The notes below the pieces were generated by a model that was not told the DNA's origin, ran no database searches, and saw only the letters and a program-made list of their open reading frames with translations. Of a stretch of 64,000 nt of DNA, positions 1 through 43,796 are shown one piece after another. Each line of letters starts with the position of its first letter. The first letter of the stretch is position 1. The stretch spans positions 104,532,001 through 104,596,000 of the forward strand of contig OZ241826.1 in assembly GCA_965202585.1 (NCBI GenBank). Reading direction: 5' to 3'. Made by a program: the position numbers and the translations under genes. The stretch is from Thalia democratica (Eukaryota).

Positions 1-437
1 GTACGTTTCTGCAAATCTGCAGAAACTTATACTTATGTGCAAACTGTTAGTCTATACAGAAACGATTGATTAAAGCAATCAATATGATTGATTTATATAA
101 GTTTGAAGAATTATGATGTATAAAAAGTATGTATACAAATACAGTTAAGTTGTCTGTATATTTTTTTGATATGTTGTGTGTTATGAGTCTATACAGAAAC
201 AATTGAGTAAAACAATCAATATTGTTGATTTGTTATGAATTAAAAAAATATATTGTTTAAAATGAATGTATACAAATACAGTAAAGTTATTTGTATCATT
301 GTTTTGTTTTAAGTTTTTGGTTATCCCTTTTGTTAAATATTTCAGGATGACAATACTTGTTTTCAATATAATAAGAAGAGATGGTAAATTTTTATAAACA
401 ACTCTCTAGCTTTTAAACCTATTATTTATATAAAACT

Positions 438-798
438 CAGGGCTGCCAAAATACCTGGAATCCTGGAAATTTAGGCTAAAAACCCTTGAAAAACATGAAT
501 ATGAATTAAAAAAAAAATAACTTGAATTCAAAAATTGTTTACAGGTAAGTAGAAAATTTTGATTTGACACAAAAAGTCTATCATATGAAAAAAAATTCTT
601 TTTATCATCAAAATTTTTTCTATTTAAAACTACACATTTGAAGTTGCTTTACAGTGTCTTTTTAATGTTTATACGCAGTTTTTTTTACTTAAAACTAAAC
701 TTTAAAGTAAAATTAGGCCTAAAAATTGGTATTTTGACAAACCTGGAGGAATTTTTGAAAAACTGGAGAAAATTTGCTAAAAACATTTGGCAACCCTG
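438..798. mobile_element. Non-autonomous TIR element (MITE), CAGGG[T/C]TGCC family, 6-bp TSD AAAACT
   Basis: CAGGGCTGCCAAA ... TTTGGCAACCCTG; AAAACT on both flanks; internal CCTGGA subterminal repeats. Confidence 0.8.
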
Positions 799-1307
799 AA
801 AACTGTGTATAACAGATATATTTTGAGCATCCAATTTTTAAACATTCAATACAAGTTTTCACTCAGTTTTCAAATTAGAATAAATTTCAATTTATTTTTA
901 GTTATATTAACAAATACAAGTTTTTTGAAGCTTATTTCGATTGAGTTACAGCAAAAATTATAAAAAAAAACTTATGCAGGCAAAGAAGCCTTTCCGGAAA
1001 ATTGGAAATTTTTAATTTTCTAATAATACTTAGGTTAAACTTTATACTCATTATTAGATTCTATTTACTTTACACAGACATCGTTTAAGTTTTATCGTAA
1101 CACTTAATTTCAAATTTTAATTTACATGCAGACAAAGAAAGACTTTCCGTCAAGTTTTAGTTACCTAACCATCTTAATTCAGTAACATTTTTCACTCACT
1201 ATTAAGTCACACATAGACATCAGTGAAGTCTTTTAAAACTGTTCAGTAAAGCTGTTTCTTTTAATAAGTCTAAAAGTAATATACTCAATCTCAAACTATA
1301 CTTACAG

Positions 1308-4300
1308 GAAAGGAAGATTTTCCGGAAAACTGGGCCAACTTGCTGCAGGACATGGTGAACCACTTCGCCAGCGGCGACTTTAACAGAATCAATGGTGTTC
1401 TGAGGACAGCTCACTCCCTGTTCAAAAAGTTTGTTTATATTAAACGTCTTTTAGTCAATATATTTATAAAATGTTATGTCAAACTAGTTTAAAGCATTAG
1501 AAATCATGAATACACATGTATATCAAACAACATACAAAACAACTACAGAGGAAAATACTGAACATTTTGTATAATTAGTCATCAGATTTTTTTGATATGT
1601 GTATTTTAATTATTAAGGAAATGTTACAGATGTACAATCATGATTTAAGAACTTTTGAATAACATATGTTCAAAACAATTTTCACAAGCAAAAAGCAAAC
1701 TTACTGAATTTAAAACCGACAAATGAATTAACCACAAACAGGTACAGATACGAGTTCAGGAGCGACAACTTGTACCGCGAAATCAACCACGTGATTGAAA
1801 ATTTCGCCAGCCAGTTCACTGAGTTGTTCCTGCAGTTCGTGCAAATACTTCCCCAGCACGTCAACAACAAGGAGCAAGTCAAGGTGATAAAATAATTAAT
1901 TAGGAAAGACTGTTATGCAGGGTTGCCAAAAAAAATTGGAAACCCGGAATTTGAGAAAATTAAAAAAAAAAAACTGGAAAAACCTAAGATTTTAAACAAA
2001 TTTTACATGTTAAGAAGTAAGTTATAGCTTTGACACAAACAATTTACTATATAGATAAACTTTTAATTTAAAATCACATTCAAAGTAGCTTTACAGTATC
2101 TTTTCAATATTTTATACTATTTAAGACAGTTTTTTACCTTAAACTTAACTTTAAACTAAAAATAGGCCCAAAAGTGTGTACTTTTAAAAACCTGGAGAAA
2201 ATTTACCAAAAACATTTGGCAACCCTGTATCGTACATATTTGCTGTTAAAGTAAGTTTGATAACAGGCAATAAGTTAAGGTGGGTTTTCTGAAAATATTT
2301 AATAAGCACAAGTAGTTAAAAAAAGATTTAAATGTCGTGTTGTTTGATTTTTTATATTTATGCATTGATAAATTAATAGATATTTAAATATACCTCTTGA
2401 AATTGTTTTATCTCTAAGCACACCAGCATAATTTTTATATAACAAAACTTAAATGAATGTGGATTAGCTTTTCTATGCAAACTTTCAGAAGTAGAAAAGT
2501 TGTAAAATTATTTGTACTTGCTGTTGATAACAGCAAATATAATTTTGTTTTTAAACTGATGCTTTTTATTTAACTCACTTTAAGGTTTTAAAGTTTGTTG
2601 TAAATGTGCGAAGTATTTTTACGCACATGTTACTTTAAAACATTTTGTTTTTATACTTCAACCATTTTTGTTAAAAGTAAAACTGATTAGTTTAGAAAAA
2701 AATTATAAAAAGGGTTTTTGTTTTCAACTGGTTATAGAGAGTCGGACACAAAATAAATTACTTAAACTTAGTAAAACAATGAAACTACCAGTTGCCGTTT
2801 TACTAGTACTTTCTAAACACAAAGTAACATTAAAATAATTAGTTTTGATAAAAAAGTATTTGTTTTTGTCTGCCTTAACTTTAATTTCAAAATACGTAAT
2901 TTATAAACATTTTAGTCCCGTACATTTTTTTCCTAAATACTTCATTTCTATTTATTAATATATATGTCTTCATACATACTAACATAACTTTATCAAAAAC
3001 TAAAACAATTGCTTGTTCATTAGTTTGTTTTAAACTACATTGGTAAAAATACACATTTAAAACTAATATTATTTTAATAACAGGTCTTCTATAGCTCGCT
3101 TGTTCTAATCGCTAAAATATTCTACAGTCTCAACTATCAGGTTAGAATTAATTGTTATTTAGTTTACTATTTTTATTTTATTAATTTATTGCTATTATTT
3201 ATTTATTGTTTGTTGAATAATTTTTAGTATCCACAGTCATTATTATATGCCAGCGGTTCTCAACCTTTTTTCAGGTTCTATCCCTTTTTGGAAGGTTCAA
3301 TACCCAATTTACGCCCAAAATAAAGTTTAGACTTAGATTAAACCGAAAGGAGTAAATTTGGTGTTAACTTTCCGAAAAGAGGTAAAACAATAAAAAATGT
3401 TGAGAACCCCTGATCTAAAGTATTTTCATAATTTAAACTTGAAAATAGTCTGCAACTTTATTTAAATTAGATTTTATTTATTATTTAATTAATTATTTAT
3501 TTATTGTTCAAGGACCTGCCGGAGTTTTTTGAAGACAACATGAAAGTTTGGATGGAAAATTTCGAAAGATTGTTGGAAACAAATATCCCTGTGCTAGCCA
3601 CTGATGTCAGTTTGTTTTATTGATTGGTTTTTATACTGTTATATTAATCTGTATAATTTACTTTATTATTTAAATTATTTACATTTATTTTATTAGTTTT
3701 CTTTTATACTGTCGTATTAATATTTTTTTATTTAATTAAAAAAATATTGGAAACAATAATCCCTGTGTCGAAGTAAATCATTTATCAATATTTATTTTAT
3801 TAATTTTTATACTGTTATTTAATCTTTATTATTTTTCTTATTACTAGGAGCAATTGTTCCTTTGTTAGCTACCAATGTAAGTATAGTATTTACATATTTG
3901 TCCTTTGCTTTTATTCAATAAGGCTATTTGTTTTATTAAAGTATTTAGCTACCAATATAATTCAAAACATTACAAGTAGGTTACCTTTAATGATTTTAAA
4001 AACTTATAGCCTAACCACAATGTGATTAAAACTCATAAACAAAATACTTAATGTTAAAAAAAAAATGCAAAATTTAAAAGTGATGGTTTGAAATATATTA
4101 AAGTTATTATTAGTCTATTCAATTGCACGTTTACATTATACTAATTAAAACAAAATTAAACCAACAAATTTTCTTGTAATTTAATATAAAATCACCTAAA
4201 AATGAACAATGAGTATCAAATAGTACAAATAATAGGAAAAAATTTAGTTAGGATGACGACCCAAGATTAGTTGAATGTTTGAGATCACAAATTTTCTTAT

Positions 4301-7300
4301 ACTATGATTTAAAACTATATGAAAATAAATATTGAGTAACAAATATCATAAATAACCTTATAATTCAGGACGATGACGAACCGGGGTTGGTTGAGTATCT
4401 GAGGTCACAAATTTGCATGAACATCTCCATGTACGCTCAAAAGTACGGTGAAGAGTTCAAACCGCACGTCGAAGGATTCGTGGGCAAAACATGGAACATG
4501 TTGGTCGGCACCGGAAGAGAAATGAAATACGACCTGGTATTTGTTTATTATAATTTTTGTTTGTTGTAGTATTTGTTAATATTAATATATAAAATGATAA
4601 TGGCTGTTAGATGAAATGTGATCTGGTTTTTTTAAATAATTTTATTAATTTATTGTAATATTTAGTAATGTTAATATATAAAATGGTAATGACTATTAGA
4701 TGAAGTACGATCTGGTATTTGTATATTATAATTTTTATTAATCTATTGTAATGTTTAGTGTCTAACAAAAATTAAAATTAAGCTAGCTTAAGACGTGAAC
4801 ACTGTGTTTTAATTTTAAAGGTTTTTAATTTACTTGCTAGTATTCCAAAGTGTCAACTTTTTGAAACCGGTTTGTGGTAACAAAAAAAAACACTTATATA
4901 TTGTAAATAACACATATGTATACTAGTTTTTTACTTTCAGACAGCTCGTATCGCACGGAATCAATTTTATGAAATCAGTTTGCGACAATAAAAAAATATG
5001 TATTTTGTAAATAGTATAAATAACAATAATTCTATTATTTTCAAACAGCTCGTATCGTACGGAATCAACTTTTTGAAATCGGTTTGCGAAAATAAAAAAA
5101 CCCATTTATACACTGTAAATACACAAATATATATAATTAATAGTTATTTTACTTTCCAACAGCTCGTATCGCACGGAATCAACTTTTTGAAATCAGTTTG
5201 CGACAATAAAATAATATGTATGTTGTAAATAGTATAAATAATTTACAATAATTCTATTACTTTCAAACAGCTCGTGTCGCATGGAATCAACTTTTTGAAA
5301 TCGGTTTGCGACAGACCGCAGTACAAGCAGATGTTCGAATCTGAGCAGATCATGCTGGAAATTTGTCAGAAGGTTAGTTTTATCATTACTTTTGTGTAGA
5401 AAAATTACAAGCCAAGTCTTACTTTTGAGAGTTAATAAATAATGCATAAATTGTGCTAAAAACATTTATAACTGATATTGTATGCGTGGTTTATTAAATA
5501 ATAAAATAATTCATGCTGGAAATTGTCGTAGGGTTCGTTTTGTTTACTTAGCAAAAATAATAAACAAGTATTATTTCTTTTATTAAAATTTCCGTGTTTA
5601 CTAAAGTAGAGTTACTATAGTCACACGTTGCTTTTATTAAAAACTCAACTTATTAATGCTGTAAATGTGCTTTGTTAAGTAATAAAAACTGACTTTTTAT
5701 TAAGTTTTATTAATGCTATAAATATGCTTGATGAAGTAATAAAAGACATAAAAAAAAAACACATTAAGCTGTGTAGAAAATGGACTTTGTTATTGATAAT
5801 TAAAAAAAATTAAAATTTATTTTTTAAGAGAGTGACACATAAACTAATTGCACACAGTAACATATTTGAGCCAGTTTCTTTAAAAAATTGCTAATTTTTT
5901 GTGGTTTTTTTTATAAAGTTCAGGTATTTTGCCCAAACATTATGTTAAGAGAGTCAAACATACTATTTACTAGTCTTTATTACTTTGATTAATTGTTTTT
6001 TTAGATTAGTTACTCAAACATTTTGTTCAAATTATTCTTATTAATTTACAGGTATTTTGTCCGAACATTATGTTAAGAGAATCGGACGTAGAAATTTTGT
6101 ATATTAAATATTTATTTATTATCATTAATTTTCAGGTAATTTGTCCAAACATCATGTTAAGAGAATCAGATGTAGAAATTTTGTATATTAAATATTTATT
6201 TATTATCATTAATTTTCAGGTAATTTGTCCGAATATCATGTTAAGAGAATCAGATGTGGAACAGTTCGAAGACAACCCTGAAGAATACATCAGAAGGGAT
6301 ATGGAAGGCAGCGGTAAGAATCATAATCCAATTTTGTTATTATTTATATTTAATTTTTAGTCCCCCTACAGTTCGGATGAAAATATATTAAATGGTTTTA
6401 TTAGTAAAATATGCTTTTTTATTTATAAAATTTCGCTATACCAAGAATTACTTTTACTAGTAATTAAATTTACTTATATTAAAGTTGAACTATACATGTT
6501 AAATATAATAATTAATAATGTTCCTGTATTTTTAACAAAAGAATATAAGCTTTTTTTACAAGTAGACAAGTGTATGTTTAATCATTATCCTAATGAATTT
6601 TGATAAAACTCGCAAACATTTACAAACTGTACTGTTACGTCACAAAAGTAATTTCATAATATGACGTCACAAACGTGATTTCAGACGTGGACACGCGCAG
6701 GAGGGCGGCGTGCGACTTGGTCAAGTCGTTCACAAACCAGTTCGAAGAAAGGACGACCAAACTGTTCACCCAATACGTGCAAGAAATGCTCAATGTTGGT
6801 TTTTAATATATTGTATTGTTATAAGGGAAGACTAATATGTTCAAAAAATACTTCAAATTAAATGCTTTGAGTTGCAAGTAATGCTCAATGTTGGTTTTTG
6901 TGAATACTTGTAAATGTTGTATTATTATGAGAAAAACTAAAAGGGAAAAATAAACTATTTCACTTAAATTCTATCTTCAGTTTTTGGGTAAAAAAAAATC
7001 AGAGTAATATTTGACAAATTTTAAACAAGTTGTTGGAAACAGAACTTTTAGTTTTTGTAAAAAAAAAATTTTCAATTTTTTTTCAAAAATTATTTTATGG
7101 ATTAAAAAAAATCCGATGTTTACAATTTGTTTTTACTAATGAAAAGTATTTTTTCTGAAAACTCAAATTAAATTGCTTTAAAAATGAAGGAGAAGATAGA
7201 TTTTTACAAAATTTTGTGAATATTGGCCTTGAAAATCTTGATTCCTTACGGCAGTATTTTTTTTAAACAAATTACGTTATATCTCAAAAGTTAGTTGTTT

Positions 7301-10300
7301 TTTTTTTTTAAATTATCTGAAAAATTATGTACTCTGAAATTTAAAATAAGGGCCAATATTAGTTTTTGTAAAAAAATAAAATTGTTGGACCCCCTATGCC
7401 CTTAATTTGAATAAAAAGTGCAAAACTCGAAGTGTGACTTTTTAAACAGATAGCTTAACTATAAGAACTTATAGCTCTAATGATAATTAACTTTAAAATT
7501 TTATATTTTGTATATAAGTATTTTGTATATAAATTTAAATAAAGTCAATTAGTCAGATGAACACATAAATTTATGAAAGTGGTGTTTGTCTTTTTTAGTT
7601 AAATTTATTATCTTAGGGTATGACCGATTTAGTTTTTTTTCTTTGAGGCCATAAGCACATCAAATTAAGTGCACGAATGTAAGTTTGCCAAAGGCATTGT
7701 TTTAAAGATGCTTATGATGAACAATTTTGTTTGTTGAAACATGCTAAATCACAAAAATGCTCTAAATGGTGGCAAATACGGCTACTGTTATTATGATGGA
7801 TAAAAAGCCTAAATAATGTTAAGTTTTATTTTATTTTAATTCCAAAGTTTTAAAAAGCAACCTTTCAGACCTACTTCAAGTGCCAAGTGTTTTATTATTT
7901 TCAAAATTTCAATAGTTAAAAAAATAAAACTTTTTTGTCCCGTGTAAATTTCGAGTTGAAAATAATAGTGGCATTATTGAAAAGTATAATATCTATTTAA
8001 TAAAAAGCGAGTAAAAAACTGTTGCTCTTCACAAATGAAGCTGTAAAATTTTCACATTATTCTGCATGATCTCACGGTACTTTTTCAGTTACGAAAGATT
8101 TAGGTGATTTTCGTACTTATGTAACAATTTTTTTTAGTTTTAATTTTTTGTCTTTATGCACTTCAAAGTTTAATTTATTTGAGTAAAATCCATTAAAAAT
8201 CCGCAAAAAAGTTCCAGCGACATCATTAATTATTCATGCTTTTGTGTTTTCGCTTGGGATCATATTGAAGATTGAACGTCATTACAATTGGTTTATTGAT
8301 CGAAGTAAAATATTATGAAATATTTTTTTAAGTGATTTATTATAATCATTACAGAAAGGATTTTGTTAATCAATTTAATTTTGTTGTGTAACATAATTTA
8401 TATTGGACTTCATTTAATAACATAATTTTTATTCGTCATTTGATGCTTATTGTATTATTAATTGTTGCTTATTCATCATAGATATTCATTTATTATAAGT
8501 TTTTAAAACCACATTATACAACACGTTGAACAAATTAATAATTTTTTCAAACAACAAGGACACGTGTTAAAATTAGTTTTTACGAGTAGTAGAATATTTA
8601 TATGCAACTATAGTACTTGGTACTCATTAGATTTTATAACGACCTTCACCTTCCGTAGACAAACAGCAGTTTTTTGCAAAATTAAAAGTTGTATAAGACT
8701 GGCTACAAGATTAGTTTTATCTCTAAATTATATCAAATTGAAATTAAGAATATGAAGCAAAGTTTTTTAATTTGTTATAGAGAAAAGTGTAAGCAGTTAA
8801 GTTTTTTTGCACAATTTTACTTAGAATCCGTAATAAAGGTTATAAGCTGACTGAATTGATAGAAATTAAATATTATTGACTTTTTACTAATTTAAGGTCG
8901 TTGTATTTAGTCTGTATTCAATATGATTGTCAACAACAAGTTTTTAAAATTTGAATTTATTTAAGCATATTTGTTAAAGTATAAAGATAAAAGCTTAATT
9001 TTTAAAAGAAGTTAAAAAAGAAGTTTAAAATAATCTCAATTACCATTTTTGGAAAACGTACATATTGTATTTAATGCTTAATTTTGAAAATACTCGCAGC
9101 TACAACACAATAATGGTTTTTGTCAATTCACAGCAAGATTCAATTAACAAATATTCAAATAAATTTTCATAGAAATGAGTCTAATTCGGCGTTAAGACGT
9201 AACAGTTCATCAGAGTTACTTCGCAGACAAAGCACAAATTTCTTATGACGCATATTTATTTTACAAACAGACCTTATACAAGTTATACACCAAAGTAATT
9301 AAATAATTAAAATGTTACTTATGACGTAATAATCGCGCAGGAGTACGCGTCGGATAACACGAGATATGTTAATTAGACTTGAGTAACTAATTAAATTGTT
9401 ACTTATGACGTAATAATCGCACAGGAGTACGCGGCTAATAACAGAGATATGTTACTAAGACTTGAGTAAGTAATTAAATTGTTACTTATGACGTAATAAT
9501 CGCACAGGAGTACGCGGCTAATAACAGAGATATGTTACTAAGACTTGAGTAAGTAATTAAATTGTTACTTATGACGTAATAATCGCACAGGAGTACGCGG
9601 CTAATAACAGAGATATGTTACTAAGACTTGAGTAAGTAATTAAATTGTTACTTATGACGTAATAATCGCACAGGAGTACGCGGCTAATAACAGAGATATG
9701 TTACTAAGACTTGAGTAAGTAATTAAAAAATTACTTATGACGTAATAATCGCGCAAAAGTAAGATGAAGATAACATGAGATGGGTTACTAAGACTTGAGT
9801 AAGTAATTAAAATGTTACTTATGACGTAATAATCGCGCAGGAGTAAGATGAAGATAACATGAGATATGTTACTAAGACTTGATAAGTAATTAAATTGTTA
9901 CTTATGACGTAATAATCGCGCAGGAGTACGCGGCAGACAACACGAGATATGTTACTAAGACTTGAGTTAGTAATTCAGAATTACTTATGACGTAATAATC
10001 GCACAGGAGTACGCTTCAGACAACACGAGATATGTTACTAAGACAATTATTAAAGAAAGTTACTTATGACGTAATAATCGCGCAGGAGTACGCGGCAGAC
10101 AACACGAGATGGGTGCAGAAGGACGCTGCGATCTACCTCGTGACCTCGTTGGCCAATCAGGGAGCCACGAAGGAGCACGGCGCCACCAAGCGGAACCAGT
10201 TTGTCGACGTGGAACAGTTCTTCCACCAACAGATCGTGCCCGAGCTTCAGAATGCCGATCGTGCGTTTTTGTTTATTGTTGCTTATTTTATGTTTTTGTT

Positions 10301-13300
10301 TATTGTTTGTTTAATATCAAATATTTAGTTCTTCTATAAACAAATTATTGCTGTGAACTTCAGAACACTAATCGTATATTTTTATTTATTTATCAATTTA
10401 AGCTGCTCATACTCCTAAATTGCTTATTTTATTCAAGTTCAGACATTTCAGAATTATTTTAAAATATTATCCGAAAAAACGTCTATATAGTTTTGGGATT
10501 TTTTTTGTTTATTATTTACTTTAAATTGCTTATTTTATTGAAGTTCAGATATTTCTGAATTATTGTTTTAAATATTATCGGAAAAATTGTCTCACGGTTT
10601 TGGAACTACAGACCTTAAAGTTTTTTAGAACCAAAATGTAAGAAACGTACTTTTTTTTTTAATGCTATTATTTTCTTTGATTTTTAAAACTTTTGAAAGC
10701 AAGTTCATTCATTGGTCCAGTGTACTAGAAATTTTTACTGACGTAGTAACTTCCCGGAGCTAATTTGCTATATATTTTTACCACTTCTAAATATTAAATA
10801 ATCAGCTTTTCTTTCAGCCATCGACTTAAAAAATTATCTTATCATATAGAAACCAACAATTTACAGGCTTTAATTTCTTTTTTGTTTATAATATACTGAA
10901 GTAGCACTTGGGGTAATCAAATTTTAAGGTTGCTTTAATAATTGATATTTTCAACAACCACCACTGATTAGTGCAATTAAAAGCCTTCTGCAAATGAATG
11001 CATTTGTTTTCTCAGATTTTTAAAGTTTTAAGAAATAAGATCGTTCATTGGCCAATATTGTTCTAAATAATATTAAATAAAACATACACTTTTTCCCAAC
11101 ATCCGCACACTTACTTTAAATCAATCCTGGCCCAGGTGTTGGCAGCCTTTTGTAACACTTTCCAAAAAAGATTGCTCGTGGATCGCACTTTAAAAAAAAT
11201 TTTTTGAGGGCCGCAATTATTTAAAAATAATCATAGTAATTAATAAAAAAATTTAATTCTAAGCCAAAATATTAAAAAATAATCAGTAAAACAGCATTAG
11301 TTGTAAGTTATTACTGCAAAACATTTTTTAATACGTTTTTAAAAGAGTGTGTTTTTAGCTAAAAAGTAGTTCACGGCAGCAAATTTTGTCTTTGAGGGCA
11401 GCATTTGGCCCGCGGGCCGCAGTTTGCCGACCCCTGTCCTAACCCATTGGCACAGGAAATTCTGATGAAATTAATAATGATAAAAAAAAATGAAAAATAT
11501 TTTTTTCTTTTTTTATAAAATATTTAATAATTCCACACAGCCGCCCACTTACCGGTGCTGAAGGCGGACGCTCTGAGGTACGTGGTGACGTTCAGAAGCA
11601 TGTTGGGGAGAAACAACCTGGTGCAATCGCTACCACTCATCATAAATCACCTGGACAACCCATGCAGGGTGGTGCACACGTACGCGTGTCACGTGATCGA
11701 AAGAATGCTCGTGGTGAAGAACCCCGGCGAAAACACACCGCTGTTAGTTTGTTATATGTGTGTAAAACTAACATTAAATCGTTATTGTTTATCAATTAGT
11801 TTGTTTAAATCACCAAGCAAGCTGAAATTATTAGTTATTTTCTATATTGATATATATGAAATTTTTTCGAAAACTCACCGCTGTTAGTTTGTCATATGTG
11901 TGAAACTAACATTAAATCTTTACTGTTTATATATTAGTTTATTCAAATTAGCAAGCAGGCTGCAATTATTGCGATAGTTATTTTCAATGTTGATTTAAAT
12001 AAATTTTTTTTATATACCACTGTTAGTAACTGGTTTTCTTACTTATATAATGTTTCAGTTTGATTAAGAATTTTTAAACCATGTTATGTTAATAAGTCGA
12101 GTGAACTCTAACAAGTATTCATGCAAGCTTTGATTACTATCTATATTTTTTTCAATGGAAATTTCCAAAGGCGACTTTTAACTTTTTTTAATTAAACCTC
12201 ACATTCACAGGATAACACCACAAGACATCGAGCCCCACTTGAACAACATACTAACTAAATGTTTCGCCGCAATGGAGATGGAAGGAAGTAAGGAGAACGA
12301 ATACTGCATGAAATCTTTGATGAGGGTCGTATCACTCGCTCAAGCTTCGTTGTTGCCTTGCATGGAATTACTCGTGCAGAAGTTGCTGCAGAAACTCAAT
12401 GACGCTGCAAGGGTCGGTTGATAAATATTTTGTTTAAATTAATTTAAGTTCGGTTGTTTTGGTTACTTTGTTAATAGAAATATTTTTGCCAGATTTTTTA
12501 AACCTAGAAGTCTTCACAGGGTCTTTGTAGTATGTTGTATTATTTTTTTTAAGGTTAATATTTTTGAATTGGTAATTTTAAACGATAACTTCAAGTCGCA
12601 GCTTATTTAACAACAACACGCCAAGGTTGGTTTGTTTTGATAAATAAATAACTCTGCTAAAGAAAGCGCTTATATTTACAATTAAAAAAATAATTATATA
12701 CAGTTGCTTTGGCACACAGCTTAGTCAAGTAAAAATTTTCATGTTAATCAAACACATTATTTTTTCAAAGCATACAAGAATTTTTTTAATGTGTAAATAT
12801 TGCTTAATAAAATACTACAAACTTGTTTTAATAGACCGATTATTACTATGAAGTTTCCCTGTCATTTATGAAGTTTTACAAGTTGTATCAAATTTACTTC
12901 TTAATATATAAAGCTGTTATGTTTATAAGAAGTATCTTTGAGGTATTAAACTATGATATGTTTGTAAGAAATAGCTCAGAAGTATTAAACTCATGAACCG
13001 TATTTAAAGTACACTCATAGAAGTTTTTGTTTATTTTGAGCTCAACGCGAACAAGCCAACTTAAAAAAATTATTTTTAACCAGTCTTGAGAAATTCATAA
13101 AATTTTTCATTTAAAGCATTTTGTGACGTAGTTGATCAAAATCGTAGATTTACTTTAAAAAAAAATATATATGATAGTCTTAGTAGTATAGATAATCAAT
13201 ATTTGACCTTTTAATTGTGTTATTAGACAACTTAAATATTTGAAGCTGTGTGAAAACACAGTACATATCTTAAAGTTACGAGTAAAGAATAATGCAAAGT

Positions 13301-25300: not shown

Positions 25301-28300
25301 AACACAGAATCCTACCAACCCTCTATTTAACCACTATTTGTTCGAAACATTCTGTTTGTCCATCAGAATCACGCTGAATCAGCAACCTGAGGCAGCCAAA
25401 ATGTTCGAAGACCACATCTACCCCATATTCATTCGCATATTGGAGAATGGAATTGACGAGTTTACTCCTTACGTTTTTCAAAGTTTGTTTCTACATTTTT
25501 TTTAAATTAATTATTTTGTTTGTTTTCAGTTCTGTATAGTAAGAACCAAAAGTAAAGTTATCTTATTTCGTGTAAAACGCACTAAAAATTTTTATAATAT
25601 TTTTCTCAAAAAAATATCACTTCTATTAAAATTGAGCCCATACCTCAAATATACATAGAAATTGTGTAAATATTATAATTTAATTTATTTACAGTAATGT
25701 CGCTTGTACTGGAGTTGAGACCCCAACCCATACCACAAATTTACATGAACATTTTTCCCGGGCTGTTGAAACCCGTTTTGTGGGAGAATAAGGGAAACAT
25801 CGCTCCATTGAGTAGACTACTGCAAGCTATCATTGACAAGGTGAGTTATTTGAAATTGAATTAAATATTTATATACCATTTGCAACTTAATATCAATAGG
25901 TTCATCTTCTTTTGAAGAAGAGCGACCTAACTTAAATACGCAAGTAGCATTAAATGGTAAAACAAAATTATTAGCAATCTATTAATAAACATGCCTTTAG
26001 TTTTAATTACTGAATCTTTAATTTTTGTATTTATTTTAATTTATTCATACGTCATAATTTAAAGTTATTTTTTAAGCTATTCACTCAACTAAAATTTTTT
26101 CAAATTTCATTTAAAATTCATCACTTGACAAAGAAATCTTGTATGATTTTGAAAAGCTTTGTGTAATAAAATATAAAAAACAAAATGAACCTATTGATAT
26201 TAAGTTGCAAATGGTATATAAATACGTTCAAAAACCTTCCTATAATAGTAATTAAATATTTATTATTAGTTATTAATGAAAAAACTGCACCGCTGAGTTG
26301 AATCCTGCAAGCTATTATTGATAAGGTGTGTAAAAACAAAATGTTATTAATGTGTTTATGATTAATAGGGAAATTATTCATTAATTACTAATTAATCATT
26401 AGTTACTTATTTAAACAAGTTTTAAGATATGTATTCAATGTCATTATGCTATTTAATACTATTTTTCACCTTTAACTTAATCTTACATTAAAAATAGACT
26501 CTAAAACGTGTAATTTTAAAATCTGGAAGAAATTTTTGAAACCTGAAGAAAAATTGCCAAAAACATTTAGAAACCCTGTGCATTAGACAAACTGGTTGGC
26601 AATATAATTAAACTTTTAAAAAGTTATCTACACAAAGTGAAATAAGATGTTTTTTTTGTAAAACAAAATTATAATAAAATAATTTACTATTAACAGAACG
26701 CCAGAGGTACATTAGAAAAACTAGTTGACATAAAAATAAATGATACAAAGGAATCTAAATAAAGTAAAATATAATTAAATTAAACTTAATTTAAATTAAT
26801 TATTTTTATAGAACGCCAGAGGTACATTGGAAAAGCTGATTGATATGAAAGGAGTGTCCCAAAGACTCATGGGAACCAAAACCAATTTCGAGCATGGACT
26901 GGGAATTATCACCAGCCTGTTTAAAGGAATATCCGAGTAAGTTAAATATTTATTATTTGCAACTAACTCTAGACATGTATTAGGAATTATTACCAGTCTG
27001 TTTAAAAGTATTTCCAAGTAGGTTAAAAAATGAAGGAGAAGATAATTTTTTATGAAATAATAAAATTTTTCGCGTTTTTTGGTTTCTGCCTTCCATAAGA
27101 AACCTGAGGTCATCGTCTTTGATCGCTTATAACTCAAAAAATACTTTGAATTTTTTCAAACGGTTAAAAATGTCTGATAGCTCAGATACAACTCTACAAA
27201 GCAAGATAAACTTGTAAAAATAGAGTTCTGATTCTGAGTGAATAGAGTTGAACCCTTAACACATGTTTGTTATGTTAATTTTATTATTTCTTCAGGCAAG
27301 AGTTAGGAGGATACAGGGATTTGTTCAGCATGCTGTTTGTGCGCTTGCAGAGAAACAAGACGAACTCATTAGTGAGAGGTTTGCTGGTGGTGTTCGCCAA
27401 CTTCATCAACTTCAAATCGCCCAACGACTTCAAACACCAAGTCGACACCATCCAAACCGGGTATAAATATAATTAATATATATACATTTTTTATATGTAG
27501 TATTGTTATAAGTTTATAAGACGACACCATTGAGACTGTGTTTGTAAAAATACAATAAATATATATACTTAATTCTATGTAATAATTAGTAACATATATT
27601 GTTTTGTCACGATACCATTTATACTGGGTAATTAATAGTTGTATAAGGTGTGCTCCCTAAAAAAATCAACCAATTTAAAAATGTACCTTGATACTTAATG
27701 AATGTTTAATAAATATGATTTTTTTTTGTATAATATTGTTATTAGTTTGCAATATATATTTTTTGTTACATACTGTTTATACTGGGTATTTAGTAGTTAA
27801 TTAAAATGTGCACACTTAAATTGTTTAGTTCTACCAGTAGTGTATCTATGTTTATTTTTTAATTTACAAAATATTGTAGCTCAAAACCTTGATAAGTAAA
27901 AGGTGTAAAACTTTTTAATTGAAATGTACACATATAAAAAATATTTTAATATTAATTATAATCTAACCACATAAAAATGTGATTTCAGTAGTAATACTTA
28001 GAATCAACGAAAAATGTTAATTTTTTTTTGATTCAATAAACATTTTGATACAGAATGTTTGAAATGGTTGTGGAAAAAGTGATAATACCGGACCTGCAGA
28101 AAGTACTTGGTACGCACAACAGGAAAATGTGTTTTGTTGCTTACACCAATCTGCTCACTAAGTGTACATCCATGACCAATCATCAGAACAATCACCTGTG
28201 GTGAGTAATATTTAAAATTTTAATTAAATATATTTTTGTTGCTTACACCAATCTGCTTACCAAGTGTACATCCATGACCAATCATCAGAACAATCACCTG

Positions 28301-29991
28301 TGGTAAATAATATTTAATATTATTTTATTACTCTCACTTGCATACAGTGTGTACAAAAACATTTAAAACAACCTTTTGTTATATATATAATTATATTTAT
28401 TAAATTATGAAAAACAATAGTTTAGATGACCGTTTCGTTTATGAGATATACAACCTCATATACTCATAAGAGAGCTAAAAGTTTATTTACAATGTTAAAC
28501 AGAAATTTGGATCAAATTTGAAATTTGTAGCTTAAAAAAATGATATTATTATATATAAAAAAAATCGGGGTCATTACACAATAGCTGTGTAGCATTGCTA
28601 GCTAAATACGTTAATTTATTTAAATATACAAATCACAGAAGTTGTCGATTATTTTATTTAACTACCAATAAATTTCTAGGTGTGGATTATTGCTCTATAT
28701 TAATTAAAATTGTACATTGAAATATTTAAATAATCGAAATTTTGTAAAAGGTGTGGATTGTTGGAGTCTCTTGTTGCATTGATGGAACTTCCGGAAGATC
28801 AAAGCAAAGATGAGCATTTCGCTGATATCGATCAATCTTCAGGTAAATATTAATAAAGTATAATAAAATTTAAGTTAAGATGAGCATTTTGCTGATATTG
28901 ATCAAAGTTCAGGTAAATATTAAATAAAATAATATAAATAAATAATAAATACCAAAGATAAGCATTTTGCTGATATCGACCAGACTTCAGCTGAAAAAAC
29001 AAAAACCTTATAATGTTTAAATTGTACTATAAAAATATTGTTATGTACAAACTATTTTAAACAGGATACCAGAACCATTACTCTCAGCTGAACTATGTAA
29101 AGTTAATTATGAGAATATTATTAAGTTTAATATATTTTAAACAGTGTAAACCTTTTAACATTTACGTTGTGCGAAATTTTATTGTTGATAATTTTCAAAT
29201 ATATCAAATATTTTAACTAGGATACCAGAACCAGTACTCTCAGCTGAATTTCGCCAAGAAGCATTTCGTAGACGAAACCGGAGTCAAGAACCCCAAGCAG
29301 TATCTCGCGCAGCAGATTTCAGAACTTTCCAAATCAGTATCTGTTAGTTTTATTAATTTAATATTATAATCGTTGTATGTTTTGATTTTTAGAAAACAAA
29401 TAAAGAGATCTCAACTACTAGAGGAGAAATAATGAATTTATTCTTTCAAGACTGTATTTTAATATTTTATATAAAATATTATAATTATTGTGCTATCTGT
29501 TTAAGTTTTTGTGAGTTTGTTTTGTTGTTAACAAAAACATACTGCGCTTTCCATAATAATTGATTTTCGAAAAAGTTTTATGTTAATGTGTTTTATTATC
29601 GAATTTAATTTTTTAAAAGTATTTTTGTTTTAAACCAACTTGTGTAACATTACTTTTATGACCTGTTGAGTTGGTAAAGTAACTAACACACATTAAAATA
29701 TGTTTCTCAATGTACTAGTGGGTATTTTGAATTTCAACTGAAACTTATACTTAAACAATTCTAGTATAAGCTACTTAACTACTTATGTTTTTAAAATCTT
29801 ATAATATTTCCAGTCATGTCTTCATTTCACAGCGTAACGAAATCATCTCATTTATTGAAACTTATACGCTTAAACTTAACAAAAACAAACTATTTTCACA
29901 GGTCAGAGTGAAGCTGCAGAATTTGAACGGAACAGTGCAGAAGCATATTCAGAACTACATGACTCAAGCGAGCGTCAACATCCACTCTTGA
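1308..29991 (+). CDS. CSE1L: Exportin-2 / CSE1-like (importin-alpha re-exporter), 5'-partial, 19 coding exons, about 840 aa in window
   Basis: Manually spliced GT-AG exons stay in frame: 1308-1428, 1742-1883, 3084-3140, 3513-3605, 4369-4536, 5271-5372, 6220-6313, 6685-6794, 10086-10260, 11541-11742, 12211-12412, 25308-25482, 25695-25840, 26812-26936, 27296-27460, 28054-28200, 28751-28842, 29221-29336, 29902-29991 (TGA). Peptides match recalled CSE1L motifs: [143 protein letters not shown]. Confidence 0.96.
1918..2227. mobile_element. MITE, CAGGGTTGCC family
   Basis: CAGGGTTGCCAAA ... TTTGGCAACCCTG; interior similar to 438-798; no clear TSD. Confidence 0.75.
3251..3412. mobile_element. Short hAT/Charlie-like MITE
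   Basis: CAGCGGTTCTCAAC ... GTTGAGAACCCCTG termini; TSD not evident. Confidence 0.6.
4925..5315 (+). repeat. 4 tandem copies (about 104-114 bp period) of acceptor + 5' end of CSE1L exon 5271
   Basis: CAG|CTCGT[A/G]TCG..GGAATCAA..TT[A/T]TGAAATC.GTTTGCGA with copy starts at 4945, 5049, 5163 and real exon 5271. Confidence 0.93.
5915..6262 (+). repeat. 4 tandem copies of acceptor + 5' end of CSE1L exon 6220
   Basis: CAG|GTA[T/A]TTTG.CC.AA.AT.ATGTTAAGAGA with copy starts at about 5925, 6052, 6136 and real exon 6220. Confidence 0.93.
9315..10110 (+). repeat. Tandem array of 10 x about 83 bp units containing the acceptor and 5' end of CSE1L exon 10086
   Basis: TTACTTATGACGTAATAATCGC[A/G]CAG|GAGTACGCGG unit starts at 9315, 9399, 9482, 9565, 9648, 9731, 9815, 9898, 9981, 10060; the last unit is the real exon. 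Confidence 0.95.
11133..11436. mobile_element. hAT-like MITE (GGCCCGCGGGCC family)
   Basis: CAGGTGTTGGCA ... TGCCGACCCCTG; flanks TCCTGGCC/TCCTAACC (6/8 match); related to 51912-52262 and a partial copy near 18030. Confidence 0.7.
13655..14342. mobile_element. Nested MITEs: 13724-14092 (TSD TTTAAC) inserted in an older related copy 13655-14342
   Basis: Inner CAGGGTTGCCAC ... GTGGCAACTCTG flanked by TTTAAC on both sides; outer CAGGGTTTCAAA ... TTTGGCAACCCTG. Confidence 0.72.
15614..17935. mobile_element. Non-autonomous DNA transposon, 15-bp perfect TIR, 6-bp TSD TGAAAA, carrying a nested element
   Basis: CAGGGTTCGTGCGCG ... CGCGCACGAACCCTG; TGAAAA on both sides; GTCAGGCTAA subterminal repeats near both ends. 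Confidence 0.85.
15928..17340. mobile_element. 1.4-kb non-autonomous TIR element nested in 15614-17935
   Basis: CAGGGTTGCCAC ... GTGGCAACCCTG with many CTCAGGGAA subterminal repeats at both ends; a degenerate relative lies at about 49880-50180. Confidence 0.8.
19000..25357 (+). repeat. Tandem array of about 75 x 81-82 bp units (plus 2 diverged 5' copies), derived from the CSE1L intron-exon junction at 25308
   Basis: Unit ACACAG|AATCCTACCAACCCTCTATTCAATCACTATTTGTTCGAAACATTCTGTTT|GTAAATTAATAATAAATTAATACTTA. Exon-copy starts at 19189, 19271, 19353, 19434 and onward; the last copy runs into the true exon at 25308. Confidence 0.97.
28130..28320 (+). repeat. Tandem duplication (102-bp offset) of the 3' end + donor of CSE1L exon 28054-28200
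   Basis: TTTTGTTGCTTACACCAATCTGCT...CAATCACCTGTG|GT occurs ending at 28200 (donor GTGAGT) and at 28302 (donor GTAAAT). Confidence 0.92.
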
Positions 29992-38600: not shown

Positions 38601-41600
38601 AAAATTTAGGTTACTAAAAATAAATTTGTGTAACCGTATAGTGCGATTTTACAACCTTCTTTATGCAATTTGTTAAAAAAAAACTCTATTTTTCAAACAT
38701 CCTAGTTTACTGTATTTAGCAGTAATTTGTAACTAACTTAATTTTCTGTAACCATAAGGTAAGGACTAGCTAAAGTTGTGTTAAGTTAGTTTCAACTGCT
38801 TTTTATACTAAACGTGCCCTACGATTAGGACATTGCTTCACAGGTTTAGTTAATGTACTATATGTATGTGCATATATATTGAAAATATAAAATTAAAAAT
38901 TAAACTTATCATACGCTTAGAGATTTAGTAATATTTTTCGTGCAAATGTTTTAAGCTATTGAGTAGTAAGTTAATAAAAATAAATATAAAATAAACATCT
39001 TAACCTACCATTCTTATAGGGCATCGTGAAACAGTTTTGGGTCATATATTAAATATGTTTTTATTGAAAGTATTAATGATTAAATACGAACGTACCATTC
39101 TGTTAGGGCATGGTGACACAGGTTTGGTACATCCGCAATTTTGTCTGATGGAGTTTTGAGTTATCACCTTACCTTTGTAGCATCCCAGAAAGTATGGAAA
39201 CTTTGCAGTTATGTGGTATCTGTTATTGAGTTTGTTACTTGAACTTTGCATGGAAACATGTATACTTCAGTTTTTATATAAGCTTTGTTAAAAAGCTTTA
39301 AAAGTACGTTCAAATTTGAATTGAAGTATATTGCAACTTCAAAACAATATTAATATAGGGAATATGAAGCAACAAAAATGTTGAATATTTAAATGTAAGT
39401 TGTTTTCAGATAAAACTACTTTATAAAGTACTGTCAAGTTGATGCTTTATAGCAATAATCATTTGATAGAAGCGCTAAAAACCTAAACTAACTTGTAATT
39501 TCCATTTCGATCTTCTCTTCCGTTGCATTCATCCAGATCTTCAGGTCTGATCTCGTTACCAAGTTCATCATTTGGTCCGTAAATCGGAAAACCATCGAAT
39601 GCAACTCCTGAAAAAAATATCGAAAACTGTTTAATGCCAACCCTTTTAAGAATTAAAAGTTAAGGTTGATACTTTGTATGATTTTCTTAAATGATACTTT
39701 CTATTGTTTGGTGCTGTTTAAAATTACTTTAGTTGTAAGTATCTACTCTCAATGTGATATTCATAACCACAACTAGTAAAAAGAATTGTGACGTCATATA
39801 TAGTTTGGCTAAGAAGCATTATTACAAATATTCTCAAACGAACAAAGCGGCGACAGCGTGTTGAAACATTAAAAATTTCTTTTATCAGGTGGAACCAAAA
39901 CACAGTGGGTACATTACGGTGATGGTAATAAAAAGTTAACATAAAACAGGTCACCAACCCACTATTTCTGATGGGACCCCACAGTAATTTTTGAACAGAC
40001 ACAAGGGGGCGGTGTGGTAGTGGTAAGTGTTGCCTGGTGATGGGTGACCCCAGCATTCGTCGAACAAATTCAGTTCTTCCGCACCTGAAAAGATAAACAA
40101 ATAATAATAAGAGTTGTCGAATAAGTTCAATTATTGGGCACCTGAATCAATTAAATAAATTTTGTTTGTTTTTCCTTAAATTTTTAGAACTTATATTTAA
40201 CACGACGTAATAGTGTTACTAAAACAGTTGAAAAACTTGGTGTTTGGTTTTCGGTACTAATGTAAAACGTTAGTACTATCAAAATGACTAAATCAACAAA
40301 GTTTAAAGTTATTACCAAGTAAAAAAAGAATTAAGTTAGTAATTTAGATAAATTTTAAAGCTTTATTTTTGTATAAGTTGAATGTGCTTTAAAGATAAAA
40401 ACTCTATACAAACGCTGAATATGGTAATATATCAAACATGTTAAAAAAATATAAAATTTTAATAAATATAAAAAACATAAAGTAATAAAATAGACATAAA
40501 CAATTAGTGTATTTTCTAACCAGCAAAATGTAATATAGGAACAAATTGAATGATATTTCAACAACAATAAAATGCAAGTTCAACAAATAAAACAACTACA
40601 TACCTGCATCACAACAGTTTCTGGTGTACGGGTTGTAAATTGGCACTCCGTTTACTGCCACCCCAATGGGCCCCATATTCAGACATCCGGGTGTGTCGGC
40701 AAATTCTGGGTTTTTGGGTATTACCCACGAATTTTGTTTCGCTTGAATGAAGTTGGGAGATCCCATGCCTCCGTTGAATGCTCCTGGAGTGATTAATTAA
40801 TAAAAAAAAAATAAAAAGGAAAAAAAAAGTTAAGTAAACAAATGTTTGTACATTATGTTTTATATACTACAAACCATACATTAAATTGTTAAAAAAAATA
40901 GGGAAGAACAAAAAAGTTTTTTTGATTAAAGTTAGGAGAACCTTTACCTCCGTGGAATGCGTCTTGAATAAATTTTATTGAAGATTTTTGTACAAATTAC
41001 TAACTATTGGTTGTATTTTTATTTAAACATTAAAAAAAGATAGCTAGTTCTACTTTAAAAGAAAATATTTTATTTAAAAAAAACATTTTAAACTGTATAT
41101 TTATTTTATAACAGAAGAAAATGTGAAATAATGCAACTATACGTTGTATAAGTTTAGTTAATTATCAATTTGTTTTTTAAGTAGCATTGTGTTCTATTTA
41201 AAATTTTTGAGTTAAAATAGTGGAATAAAATTATGCATTGAGTGCTGCAACAAATGAAACGAGAGAATTAGCTGAATTGCAGCATAATTTTTGCAAAGAC
41301 GGTTTTCGCTTAAAAGTATGTCTAGCACTTAAACTGTTGTACGCCAGAACCTTAATGTTATAAAACAAACAACTTTCTTAACTAAATTTAATTAATATTT
41401 TTACTTAAATCACATTGAGGTATATTTACATCAACAGAAAACATTTATGTTACCTGTAGGATGATCTGGCACACCGTTGCTTGAAATTAAATAAGTTAGA
41501 TCATCATTGTCTTGTATAGTGATTGTACCCTAGAAAATAACTAATGATTAATATTTCTAAAAGAACTACGCTAGAATTTATTAAACATTGTTTTTTTATA

Positions 41601-42053
41601 AATTTTTACTGCTACAAACGCATATATAATTTTTTAACTGTTTCCTAAACAAAATAGTTTGAAGTTAAAAACTCAAGAAAATAGATTATACTGCTTTAAA
41701 TGTTTAATCAACTATTTTCGTTAAAAAAAGGTTTTAATCATATACCGAATTTAAATAGATTTTAACTTTATTTAGTACTTTAAGTTAACATATTACAAGC
41801 TGATAACCATTCTATACTTAATCCTAAAAATTTGAATCTTTCCTTATCAGTTCTAATGTTCAGACATGAAAAAAATGTAATTTAAAGACTGTTCAACTAA
41901 GTAGTAATGCTTCTTAATTCTATAAAAACAATAAACCTTAACTCCGGTGTTTTGATTGGTGTGATCTCTCGATTGAAACCTCAACGTTTCTTCAAAACTG
42001 AGCGAAAAACAAGAATGCACGAAAATAATCAACAAAACAAATATGTACTTCAT
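35654..42053 (-). CDS. Secreted YHYH-domain protein with Gly/Pro/Met/Arg-rich low-complexity C-terminal region, 476 aa, 10 exons
   Basis: Minus-strand exons chain in frame with GT-AG: 42053-41937, 41529-41454, 40783-40604, 40084-39959, 39607-39493, 39219-39096, 37116-36960, 36780-36625, 36394-36200, 35838-35654 (TAA). Signal-peptide-like start MKYIFVLLIIFVHSCFS. YHYH-family motifs SNGVPDHPTG, GPIGVAVNGVPIYNP, DECWGHPSPGNTYHYH, GVAFDGFPIYGP, LDECNG, YHITAKFPYFLGCYKG. Tail of MRPG/FGGP/RPGG repeats ending MQMFQNFLRSLGMNN*. Confidence 0.88.
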
Positions 42054-42150
42054 AGTTATTAAATTGACTGTTGGAAGTATTGAACTTTAATATAATCAAA
42101 AAGAATACTAGTTTTTAAAATTTTAAACATATGTCTGCTAATTTTAATTT

Positions 42151-42836
42151 TTATACATAAAACAAGTCTTTTTCAACAACACATATATATTTCAACAATT
42201 TTCTTCAATGTGATTACAATTGTAACAAGGTAAAACAAATTTTAAACTTATATAGCCTTTTTAATTATATGAGAAATTATCAATCAAATAGCAAAAAAAA
42301 ACCCTAAACTATAACAAAAAAAAAAATTAAAAACAACAAGGAAAACGTAATTAACTGTAACAATTTAAAACAAAACAAAATTAGTCTAATTTAAACAAGG
42401 ATAATGAGTAATCAAATTCTCTTTGTTTGCATAATTCTGGCTTGTTTAAGTGAATATAAATAGCTTCTATTTTAATTAAATCAAAAATGTTTGTGCAACT
42501 TCTTAAAACTTTGAACTTTGTCTCACTGTAATTATTACCACATTTAGGATTTTTTATGCAAACAAAGAGAATTTGATTACTCATTATCCTTGTTTAAATT
42601 AGACTAATTTTGTTTTGTTTTAAATTGTTACAGTTAATTACGTTTTCCTTGTTGTTTTTAATTTTTTTTTTGTTATAGTTTAGGGTTTTTTTTTGCTATT
42701 TGATTGATAATTTCTCATATAATTAAAAAGGCTATATAAGTTTAAAATTTGTTTTACCTTGTTACAATTGTAATCACACTGAAGAAAATTGTTGAAATAT
42801 ATATGTGTTGTTGAAAAAGACTTGTTTTATGTATAA
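42151..42836. repeat. Near-perfect long inverted repeat (foldback), about 284-bp arms with a 119-bp spacer
   Basis: 42151-42434 is the reverse complement of 42554-42836; I saw one substitution and a homopolymer-length difference. Confidence 0.93.
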
Positions 42837-43796
42837 GAATACTAGTTGTTAAATTGACAGTTGGAAATATTAAAGTGTAATACAATTAAAAAAAAATAGT
42901 TGTGAAAATGCACAGTTTTGAAAATAGCAGACGAGCTTGTTATTTATCTAACTACTTTAAACAAAATATAACATATAAACTGCAATCTTTGCCATTTACG
43001 CAATTCTATCTTGTTGGTTCAAATTAAAAACATTTCAAACCGATATATTAGTTTTCACACCGACATTTTTAATAACGTTACTTACAATACTAAAAATAAG
43101 TTCATTAATAAATTGACAGCCTACCGGTTTTTATACAGATTGTAATATTGAAAAGCGTTTAATATATAATAAGTTGATAAACTTTATTAAAACGTTAACA
43201 TTTTGTTAAAAAGTTTCTAAAAAACCTTAAAACTGTTATCAATCTTATTAAAACCAATTTATGTTTCAAGTTAAAACATTACTGTTAAAAGTTCAAACAC
43301 AATTGAAACTGCTACTGAAACCTTCTACTTATACTGATAAATTATCATTTGCCCCGAAGCATTTCTTCAAATGTACCGGCTATTTTTACACTATACGCGC
43401 GCGATATTAATATCGAAAGTTAGTTAATTTTGCAAATTATTTACCGCGCAATCCGATATCAATTGTTACGTATTATGAATAACTTTTTGTAGTCAGAACT
43501 TTTGGAAGGAGTTTTTGAGCTAAAAATATGTTGAACTCTAGTTTGGAAATTTAGTTATTTGAAACATTCACTTCAAAAATATTTTGTCGGAAAAAAATTA
43601 CAAGCTGGTTTGGTTTAAGATAGTGGGACGTTAAATATTTAAACAAATTAATAAATAAATAAACTAACACTCATTACTAAAAAAATTAACTAGAACTTTT
43701 ACAATATTTATGCAACCTTAAATATTTTTTATACAGTACATATATTTTGATGCCAAAGCAAAATTAATTTCTTCAAAATATTTCTTATTTCTAATC

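Follow-up and report, generated by a model that had tools for sequence, protein, structure and literature searches.

Tandem duplications across splice junctions in the introns of CSE1L from the salp Thalia democratica

Background

Tandem repeats whose first unit lies across an exon-intron border have been described as human minisatellites in F7 intron 7 (37-bp unit) and CBS intron 13, and likewise in LMNB2 (100-bp unit), PDGF intron 4 (81-bp unit) and the interferon-induced 6-16 gene (PMC1557585). Tandem genomic duplication as a route to the gain or growth of introns is treated under the Rogers model (PMC3265369, PMC4974935, PMC2891723). Introners are transposon-derived introns (PMC9860276), and somatic internal tandem duplications are found in cancer genes, for example in UBTF exon 13 (PMC9780084). 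Intron growth and the choice of a splice site among identical candidates are still open questions, and repeats across exon borders have so far been known from single, rare loci. A literature search returned single-locus human cases and papers on intron gain, and none on the density described here or on salps.

The introns of CSE1L contain partial copies of the edges of their own exons, called echoes below. As in the human boundary minisatellites, head-to-tail units start inside the exon and carry further copies of the splice site into the intron, splicing normally takes place at the authentic site next to the exon, and unit sizes are similar (37-100 bp in human). Three features of the F7 intron 7 type are present: adjoining head-to-tail copies, a border within the unit, and use of the exon-contiguous site in RNA. 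The human examples, however, are isolated loci and all donors, whereas about half of the CSE1L junctions are affected, acceptors too, with up to 77 acceptors. In the Rogers-model cases, too, an additional splice site comes from a short tandem duplication and the mRNA is returned to its original form by splicing, but there a new intron arises from a duplicated exon, whereas in CSE1L existing introns are lengthened.

Tandem exon duplication, the source of alternative or mutually exclusive exons, is likewise a local tandem duplication within a gene. Copies of a whole exon with both splice sites and the frame kept were not found at this locus; each echo has 13-69 nt of exon and one splice site, and its use would break the frame. 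Like introners, the echoes add intron sequence at many sites, but no dispersed family at many loci and no terminal repeats were found: within the window each echo matches its own exon alone, and read depth over the echoes is near the unique level. Internal tandem duplications of cancer genes are also short (tens to hundreds of bp) and lie in transcribed genes, but they are somatic, in-frame and selected for an altered protein, whereas the echoes are germline, fixed and non-coding.

Gene models and search design

The window, that is the whole stretch of 64 kb which was analysed, comes from the AT-rich genome of a marine animal, and matches in marine metagenomes agree with a planktonic marine source. 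CSE1L is an essential housekeeping gene; its model comprises 19 exons within the window, with GT-AG introns throughout and a single open reading frame when joined; the YHYH gene lies on the minus strand, with 11 exons and an ORF of 486 aa. Exon-only probes of 45 nt were compared with the intron on their own side, with the intron on the other side of the exon and with 150 random 1.2-kb null segments. A second, stricter scan was run with junction probes, and tandem structure was examined by TRF and self-alignment. Echo counts and the excess reported below refer to two genes in one 64-kb window.

Distribution and structure of the echoes

A previous sequence-only reading of this DNA had claimed that most CSE1L exons are flanked by such copies, and this is borne out: with the 45-nt exon probes, own-intron copies are found at 17 (strong) to 21 (weak included) of the 37 CSE1L junctions, and 14-15 of the 19 exons bear at least one echo. 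Acceptors of CSE1L are echoed as often as donors. The claimed polarity, with acceptor copies upstream only and donor copies downstream only, also holds, as matches in the intron on the other side of each exon (2-3 of 57 at p<=0.02) are at about the level of chance. The YHYH gene has the same polarity on the minus strand, with own-intron copies for the 45-nt probes at 3 of its 20 junctions (acceptors of exons 3 and 4, donor of exon 6). The echo rate differs between the two genes, that of YHYH being far below that of CSE1L. Positions are listed in Table 1.

Table 1. Echoes and related copies in the window (positions in the window; "own-side copies" grades CSE1L junctions)
Feature	Position	Strand	Own-side copies	Details
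Two acceptor echoes, exon 1308	970..1149	+	strong	970-1005 81%, AG kept; 1102-1149 71%
Donor echoes, exon end 3605	3739..3885	+	strong	3739-3767 strong; ~3850-3890 weak
Acceptor echo, exon 4369	4252..4294	+	strong	unit ~117-123 bp
Donor echo ladder, exon end 4536	4537..4759	+	strong	89-bp units; GT copies near 4626, 4715
Acceptor echo ladder, exon 5271	4853..5270	+	strong	AG copies before 4945, 5049, 5163; unit ~108 bp (65 nt intron end, 43 nt exon start)
Donor echo, exon end 5372	5511..5541	+	strong	offset 160
Acceptor echo ladder, exon 6220	5919..6219	+	strong	84-bp units; copies 5924, 6052, 6136 (84-95%)
Donor echo, exon end 6794	6873..6899	+	strong	offset 95, identity 96%
9-unit array before exon 10086	9300..10085	+	strong	83-bp units (58 nt intron end, 25 nt exon start); AG in 8/9
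Weak donor echo ladder, exon end 10260	10327..10592	+	weaker	period ~105
Donor echo, exon end 11742	11868..12009	+	strong	exact tandem, 140-bp unit, 83% identity, GTTAGT kept
77-unit array before exon 25308	18972..25307	+	strong	82-bp units (32 nt intron end, GTAAAT...CTTAAC...ACAG; 50 nt exon start); identity ~96%
Donor echo, exon end 25840	26294..26331	+	strong	offset 485, of which ~340 bp is a later inverted-repeat element (~25877-26220)
Acceptor echo, exon 26812	26680..26735	+	strong	115-bp unit
Donor echo, exon end 26936	26974..27027	+	strong	offset 81
Donor echo ladder, exon end 27460	27518..27820	+	weaker	first rung 27518-27568 clear; outer rungs weak
Donor echo, exon end 28200	28234..28330	+	strong	102-bp unit (69 nt exon, 33 nt intron), identity 92-94%
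Weak acceptor echo, exon 28751	28678..28692	+	weaker	15 nt, p ~0.03
Two donor echoes, exon end 28842	28877..28990	+	strong	units 70 and 76 bp; first retains exact CAG/GTAAAT, GT lost from second
Acceptor echo, exon 29221	29050..29092	+	strong	offset 156, identity 91%
Donor echo, YHYH exon 6 (exon end 39096)	39002..39040	-		offset 87
Acceptor echo, YHYH exon 4 (exon start 40084)	40116..40146	-		junction-probe scan
Acceptor echo, YHYH exon 3 (exon start 40783)	40922..40960	-		probe scans
Copy of YHYH exon 1 5' flank (42053-42121)	42843..42909	-		ends at start codon; 694-bp foldback element between copy and original

The echoes are real, locus-specific head-to-tail duplications, each made across one splice junction. 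Units are 70-180 bp long and comprise the intron end, with 32-130 nt of pre-existing AT-rich intron, and 13-69 nt of the adjoining exon. At 11728-12009, 6032-6261, 28132-28330 and in both arrays the length of the alignment roughly matches its offset, so that the copies directly adjoin the exon (TRF, self-alignment). The intron thereby holds further copies of the splice motif, with AG or GT aligned and kept in nearly all of them: in 74-76 of the 77 units of the large array (two counts), in 8 of 9 units of the 83-bp array and in all ladder copies except that at 28990. Look-alike sites are left around the exons, as the word "decoy" in the sequence-only reading had implied.

The array copy numbers given there, 77 and 9, were recovered, with unit lengths of 82 and 83 bp respectively, and the ladders lie at 4945/5049/5163, 5924/6052/6136 and 28912/28990. 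Part of its list is less secure: the outer rungs at 27611 and 27778, like those at 3950 and 10450 and a third YHYH donor copy near 38850, reach noise-level scores when tested alone and are plausible by position only, whereas the first rung of the same 27460 ladder is clear. Greater decay of the farther copies was confirmed in the short ladders and, within the large array, at its three most distal units (78-84% identity), but not in the bulk of that array, where identity is flat at ~96%. A 199-bp array at 43919-44514 was rejected as an echo and belongs to an inverted-repeat element. The introns also hold many insertions of high-copy elements, with depth of 1e4-1e5.

Independent reads and RNA

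Tandem arrays are a classic site of assembly error, and the exact number of 77 units is the count in this assembly. Nevertheless, it is extremely improbable that the copies are stutter of long-read assembly, an explanation already largely refuted: independently built, read-derived contigs span the echoes at 26697, 27017, 28912, 28990 and 29065 with 0 differences, the array junction is present at ~45x unique k-mer depth in three runs, of which two come from other samples or organisms, and the copies have diverged from each other (70-96% identity), unlike stutter. The three runs include a ~8%-diverged organism and a marine metagenome.

A same-organism RNA contig is spliced from 25482 to 25695 and from 25840 to 26812, and further RNA pieces begin at the true acceptors 28054, 29221 and 29902; all these RNA sequences lie outside the 77-unit and 9-unit arrays. 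The exon-contiguous copy is the used copy, being the only choice that keeps the ORF and the one at which the RNA contigs are spliced, in agreement with the earlier view that only the copy continuous with the exon is coding.

Origin of the echoes and growth of the introns

Duplication at an acceptor gives a first copy, made of the intron end and exon start, followed by a second with the intron end, the exon start and the rest of the exon. The second copy alone runs on into the exon body, and only splicing there preserves the reading frame; the leftover copy stays intronic, upstream at acceptors and downstream at donors. Polarity follows from tandem duplication combined with selection for an intact reading frame, and it is not to be counted as an extra discovery. 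At most junctions one founding duplication probably took place, because the rungs within one ladder share an equal exon-part length, and slippage or unequal exchange would then have amplified the unit, to as many as 77 copies. Hence the recurrent duplication proposed earlier stands as regards tandem duplication across junctions, but mostly as one founding event followed by array growth.

The net outcome is longer introns, in which numerous unused splice sites closely resemble the true ones. Of the non-exon sequence of CSE1L, ~41% derives from echoes (24% without the largest array), and for this reason intron growth, the "engine" of the earlier reading, is a fair description. For the concentration of founding events at exon edges (next section), one possible cause would be template switching or staggered breaks where GC-rich exon changes sharply to AT-rich intron, with fill-in repair. 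No signature of breakpoint microhomology or filler was readable in the youngest pairs (28132-28330 and 11728-12009), which are AT-rich and diverged. An origin from RNA circles (back-splice or lariat) with rolling-circle copying was rejected on anatomy, because the units hold the post-branch-point intron end with its AG, which is in neither circle type.

Excess of duplications at splice junctions

Under a uniform duplication model 19.6% of tolerated events are expected to span a junction, while 15/18 (P 1e-8), 17/20 (6e-10) or 9/12 (5e-5) were observed to do so, i.e. 75-85%. This is a ~20-fold excess of junction-spanning over intron-interior duplications against even placement, in two genes of one 64-kb window. 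Such a concentration of founding events suggests that exon edges are hot spots of mutation, and tandem duplication across junctions with founding events concentrated at such hot spots is the explanation that we regard as probable.

It could be argued that there is no hot spot, and that duplication is even, exonic events are purged by selection and the concentration at junctions is a bias of detection or retention. Selection alone fully explains the polarity, constraint on one member of each junction pair would keep the pair recognisable for longer, and AT-rich introns with many high-copy insertions would have younger interiors. This account is nonetheless unlikely, as the excess remains with intron sequence alone: after masking of the exons, 9 of the 16 local families of direct repeats lie within 14 nt of an exon boundary and 2 more are outer rungs. 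Moreover, simulated detection is 98-100% for the intron-only and junction-spanning classes at the observed divergences, and only at the oldest divergence does it differ (85% vs 96%); the share seen far exceeds the one expected, and just two local tandem families lie in the 27 kb outside both gene models. As for the hot spot itself, duplication may be frequent throughout exons, with tolerance limited to events that span a junction, or it may be frequent at the junction as such.

It is conceivable, though we lean somewhat against it, that duplication aimed at exon edges acts genome-wide in this pelagic tunicate lineage and is a main force behind the growth of its introns. For this wider reading the candidate causes are staggered breaks at the GC-rich exon/AT-rich intron boundary or damage linked to transcription or splicing, with fill-in repair. 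If genome-wide, the ~20-fold excess at exon edges would point to a site-specific bias of DNA damage or repair so far undescribed, and nature would have set up thousands of contests between competing splice sites. A genome with echoes at about half of the junctions of a housekeeping gene would offer a measurable mutational route to intron expansion. It would also supply many naturally repeated donors and acceptors on which to test the rules of splice-site choice, among them the 77 almost identical acceptors that precede a single essential exon.

Usefulness of the copies and related lineages

The copies might have been kept as useful, whether as additional U1-binding sites against premature polyadenylation in AT-rich introns, as sites for recursive splicing of long introns or as splicing regulators. 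Many echo donors are identical with the true 9-mer donor (4715, 6890, 11883, 28913), AG is nearly always present in the large array, and each 82-bp unit carries a donor-like GTAAAT and a branch-like CTTAAC. Selection for usefulness is hardly probable all the same, since the farther copies are the more decayed ones, both in the ladders and at the edge of the array, motif retention is not above what 85-96% identity predicts, splicing at any echo site would break the reading frame, and one related lineage is without a unit. In the latter case a single metagenome contig joins 26714 to 26830, so that exactly one 115-bp unit (26715-26829) is absent (one observation), and it is the single-copy state.

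As comparators, the best full-length CSE1L match (P0009) was rejected as an intronless gene of an unknown eukaryote, P0004 as a contig of scrambled CSE1 fragments, and the sole result of a metagenome scan as a GC-rich locus only 45% identical. A compact AT-rich CSE1L gene from an ocean metagenome (L003), with introns of ~50 nt and without local repeats, serves as a loose comparator only. The CSE1L intron boundaries near residues 120, 160, 226, 258, 379, 416 and 542 are common to both genes (approximate, in protein coordinates). With these ~7 approximately matching positions, and with units that are not purely exon copies, the CSE1L introns do not have the appearance of intron gain by tandem AGGT duplication. 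In the ~8%-diverged organism a contig is ~120 nt shorter over 27478-27855, which is a single observation.

Gene models and copies of splice junctions

The window is AT-rich (GC ~26%), its exons being GC-richer. CSE1L exons were defined from homologues (library search) and tblastn; 19 of them lie in the window on the plus strand, all introns are GT-AG and the joined exons give a single open reading frame. The minus-strand gene has 11 exons and encodes 486 residues with a signal peptide; its match to the YHYH domain is weak and below the cutoff. The last four coding exons of this YHYH gene (35654-36780, minus strand) code for a tail rich in Gly, Pro, Met and Arg, in which 30-nt tandem repeats keep the frame at 36267-36332 and 36636-36712, so tandem duplication also occurs inside exons where it is tolerated.

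Tandem duplications across splice junctions leave partial exon-boundary copies ("echoes") in the neighbouring introns, readable by eye: at exon 5271, 65 nt of intron end and 43 nt of exon start occur four times. Tandem Repeats Finder, run on the window, returned arrays which stop at exon boundaries.

Tandem arrays ending at exon boundaries
Feature	Position	Period	Source
Tandem array	4522-4759	89	Tandem Repeats Finder
Tandem array	4853-5313	108	Tandem Repeats Finder
Tandem array	6032-6261	84	Tandem Repeats Finder
Tandem array	9300-10110	83	Tandem Repeats Finder
Tandem array	19185-25359	82	Tandem Repeats Finder
Tandem array	28132-28321	102	Tandem Repeats Finder

Exon-only probes of 45 nt were compared with their own intron, the far-side intron and, as a null, 150 random 1.2-kb segments. 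Own-side matches exceeded the null at 17 of 37 CSE1L junctions (21 with weaker ones) and at 3 of 20 in the YHYH gene, while wrong-side matches numbered 2-3 of 57 at p<=0.02, which is about chance. Copy positions were taken from a separate junction-probe scan, in which AG was kept in 76 of 77 units of the large 82-bp array (74 by a second count) and in 8 of 9 units of the 83-bp array, and ladder copies kept AG or GT in all cases except 28990. The sequence-only reading, in which recurrent duplication across junctions lengthens introns, is confirmed in its observation and supported in its interpretation; its coordinates and copy numbers are right, a few outermost copies each scoring at noise level when taken alone.

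It had also been proposed that the copies are polarised. They do lie on their own side only, yet this is no separate phenomenon, since it follows from the process: when an acceptor is tandemly duplicated the extra copy comes to lie upstream, in the case of a donor downstream, and only the copy running on into the remaining exon preserves the frame.

Evidence from reads and RNA

The copies are not an assembly artefact. Read-derived contigs from the same organism agree with 26492-26839, 26869-27159 and 28760-29339, containing five echoes, at 0 differences, and the junction of the 82-bp array was found at ~45x unique depth in the same-organism run, in that of an organism diverged by ~8% and in a marine metagenome. 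Where RNA is available, the exon-contiguous copy is the one spliced: a 467-nt RNA contig splices 25482|25695 and 25840|26812, and further RNA pieces start exactly at 28054, 29221 and 29902. In one lineage a unit is absent; a metagenome contig joins 26621-26714 directly to 26830-26948, with exactly one 115-bp unit missing, and is the single-copy state of the exon 26812 acceptor.

Concentration at exon edges

The finding which goes beyond the sequence-only reading is that short tandem duplications are concentrated ~20-fold at exon edges. When the self-alignment was repeated with every exon masked, it gave 16 local direct-repeat families at offsets 40-600 in non-exon DNA; 9 adjoin an exon boundary (<=14 nt), 2 more are outer ladder copies and 5 are unrelated (49-306, 13665, 13854, 31629, 43924). 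In a uniform model, where echo-derived DNA was removed and duplications of the observed sizes were placed evenly along the gene, 19.6% of tolerated events are expected to span one junction. Observed were 15 of 18 (same pipeline, unmasked; probability 1e-8), 17 of 20 (probe scan; 6e-10) and 9 of 12 (masked; 5e-5). Simulated intron-only and junction-spanning duplications were detected equally up to ~11% divergence per copy, and at 14% in 85% versus 96% of cases; together with the model and the masking this means that the excess is neither a composition nor a detection effect. The 27 kb beyond both gene models hold two local tandem families.

The excess may arise because the junction itself is hot, or because exons are hot and the duplications confined to them are lost. 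Of the two genes compared, the housekeeping gene CSE1L is affected much more strongly than the one for the secreted YHYH protein; a link to germline transcription could account for such a difference.

Anatomy and origin of the units

Units measure 70-180 bp (median ~100), of which 13-69 nt are exon and 32-130 nt intron; exon makes up ~1/3 on average. The exon part is constant within a ladder in the junction-probe scan (43/41/43 at exon 5271; 42/42 at exon 6220, the outermost copy aligning only to +33; 36/38 at exon end 28842), which indicates mostly one founding duplication per junction and later growth of the array. Units of the 77-unit array match the true junction at ~96% along its whole length; only the three most distal are decayed (78-84%), as expected if the array expanded or was homogenised recently while its edges are old. 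An origin from RNA circles is ruled out by unit content. Break repair with fill-in synthesis and replication template switching are the candidate sources of the founding events, with a putative hot spot at exon edges, and arrays would grow by slippage or unequal exchange.

A further duplication involves the 5' flank of YHYH exon 1 (42053-42121 and 42843-42909, 83%). A 694-bp foldback element (42147-42840; arms of 186 nt, 98% complementary) lies exactly between direct copies (53-69 nt) of this flank, directly upstream of the start codon; the arrangement fits staggered-break repair, as a single anecdote.

Of the 27.5 kb of non-exon DNA in the window's CSE1L part, 11.3 kb derives from echoes (41%; 24% if the large array is left out), and some short introns consist mostly of such DNA (~80% of 28843-29220). 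In many echo donors the 9-mer is that of the true donor, and exon 25308 is preceded by 74-76 acceptors that are intact and accompanied by a branch-like CTTAAC each.

Comparison with known systems

In human F7, CBS, LMNB2, PDGF and 6-16 the first unit of a minisatellite spans the exon-intron border, the authentic splice site being normally used (PMC1557585). These are single loci, whereas no description of junction copies at the density seen here was found in the literature searched. Tandem duplication is a documented route of intron gain (PMC3265369, PMC4974935, PMC2891723), but there the introns are new; here old introns were lengthened, since ~7 intron positions (approximate protein coordinate) are common to the window gene and L003, an ocean metagenome contig (3140 bp). 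Its compact, AT-rich (31% GC) CSE1L gene has ~50-nt introns and no local repeats. Introners and whole-exon duplication were rejected as the identity of the echoes. Another metagenome contig (ENA, 11224 bp) consists almost wholly of pieces of CSE1/CAS, which lie in either orientation and match the best full-length CSE1L match, P0009, at up to 77-89% identity; it looks like a scrambled, multi-copy arrangement from some eukaryote.

Other repeats

Short inverted-repeat and "cctggaaa"-rich elements occupy introns at 25877-26220, 440-800, 1920-2230, 13650-14320, 26510-26580, 26900-27221 and 29315-29475. Their read depth of 1e4-1e5, against ~35 for unique sequence, makes them very high-copy, and the ~8%-diverged organism has them too. 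The echo of donor 25840 lies apart from its exon because a high-copy inverted-repeat element inserted between them afterwards. Because positions 1-6 read GTACGT, a donor-like motif, the 137-bp tandem pair at 49-306 may represent the distal portion of an echo whose donor belongs to an exon immediately upstream of the window. At 43797-44514 an inverted-repeat-bounded element, unrelated to any exon, holds three 199-bp tandem units.
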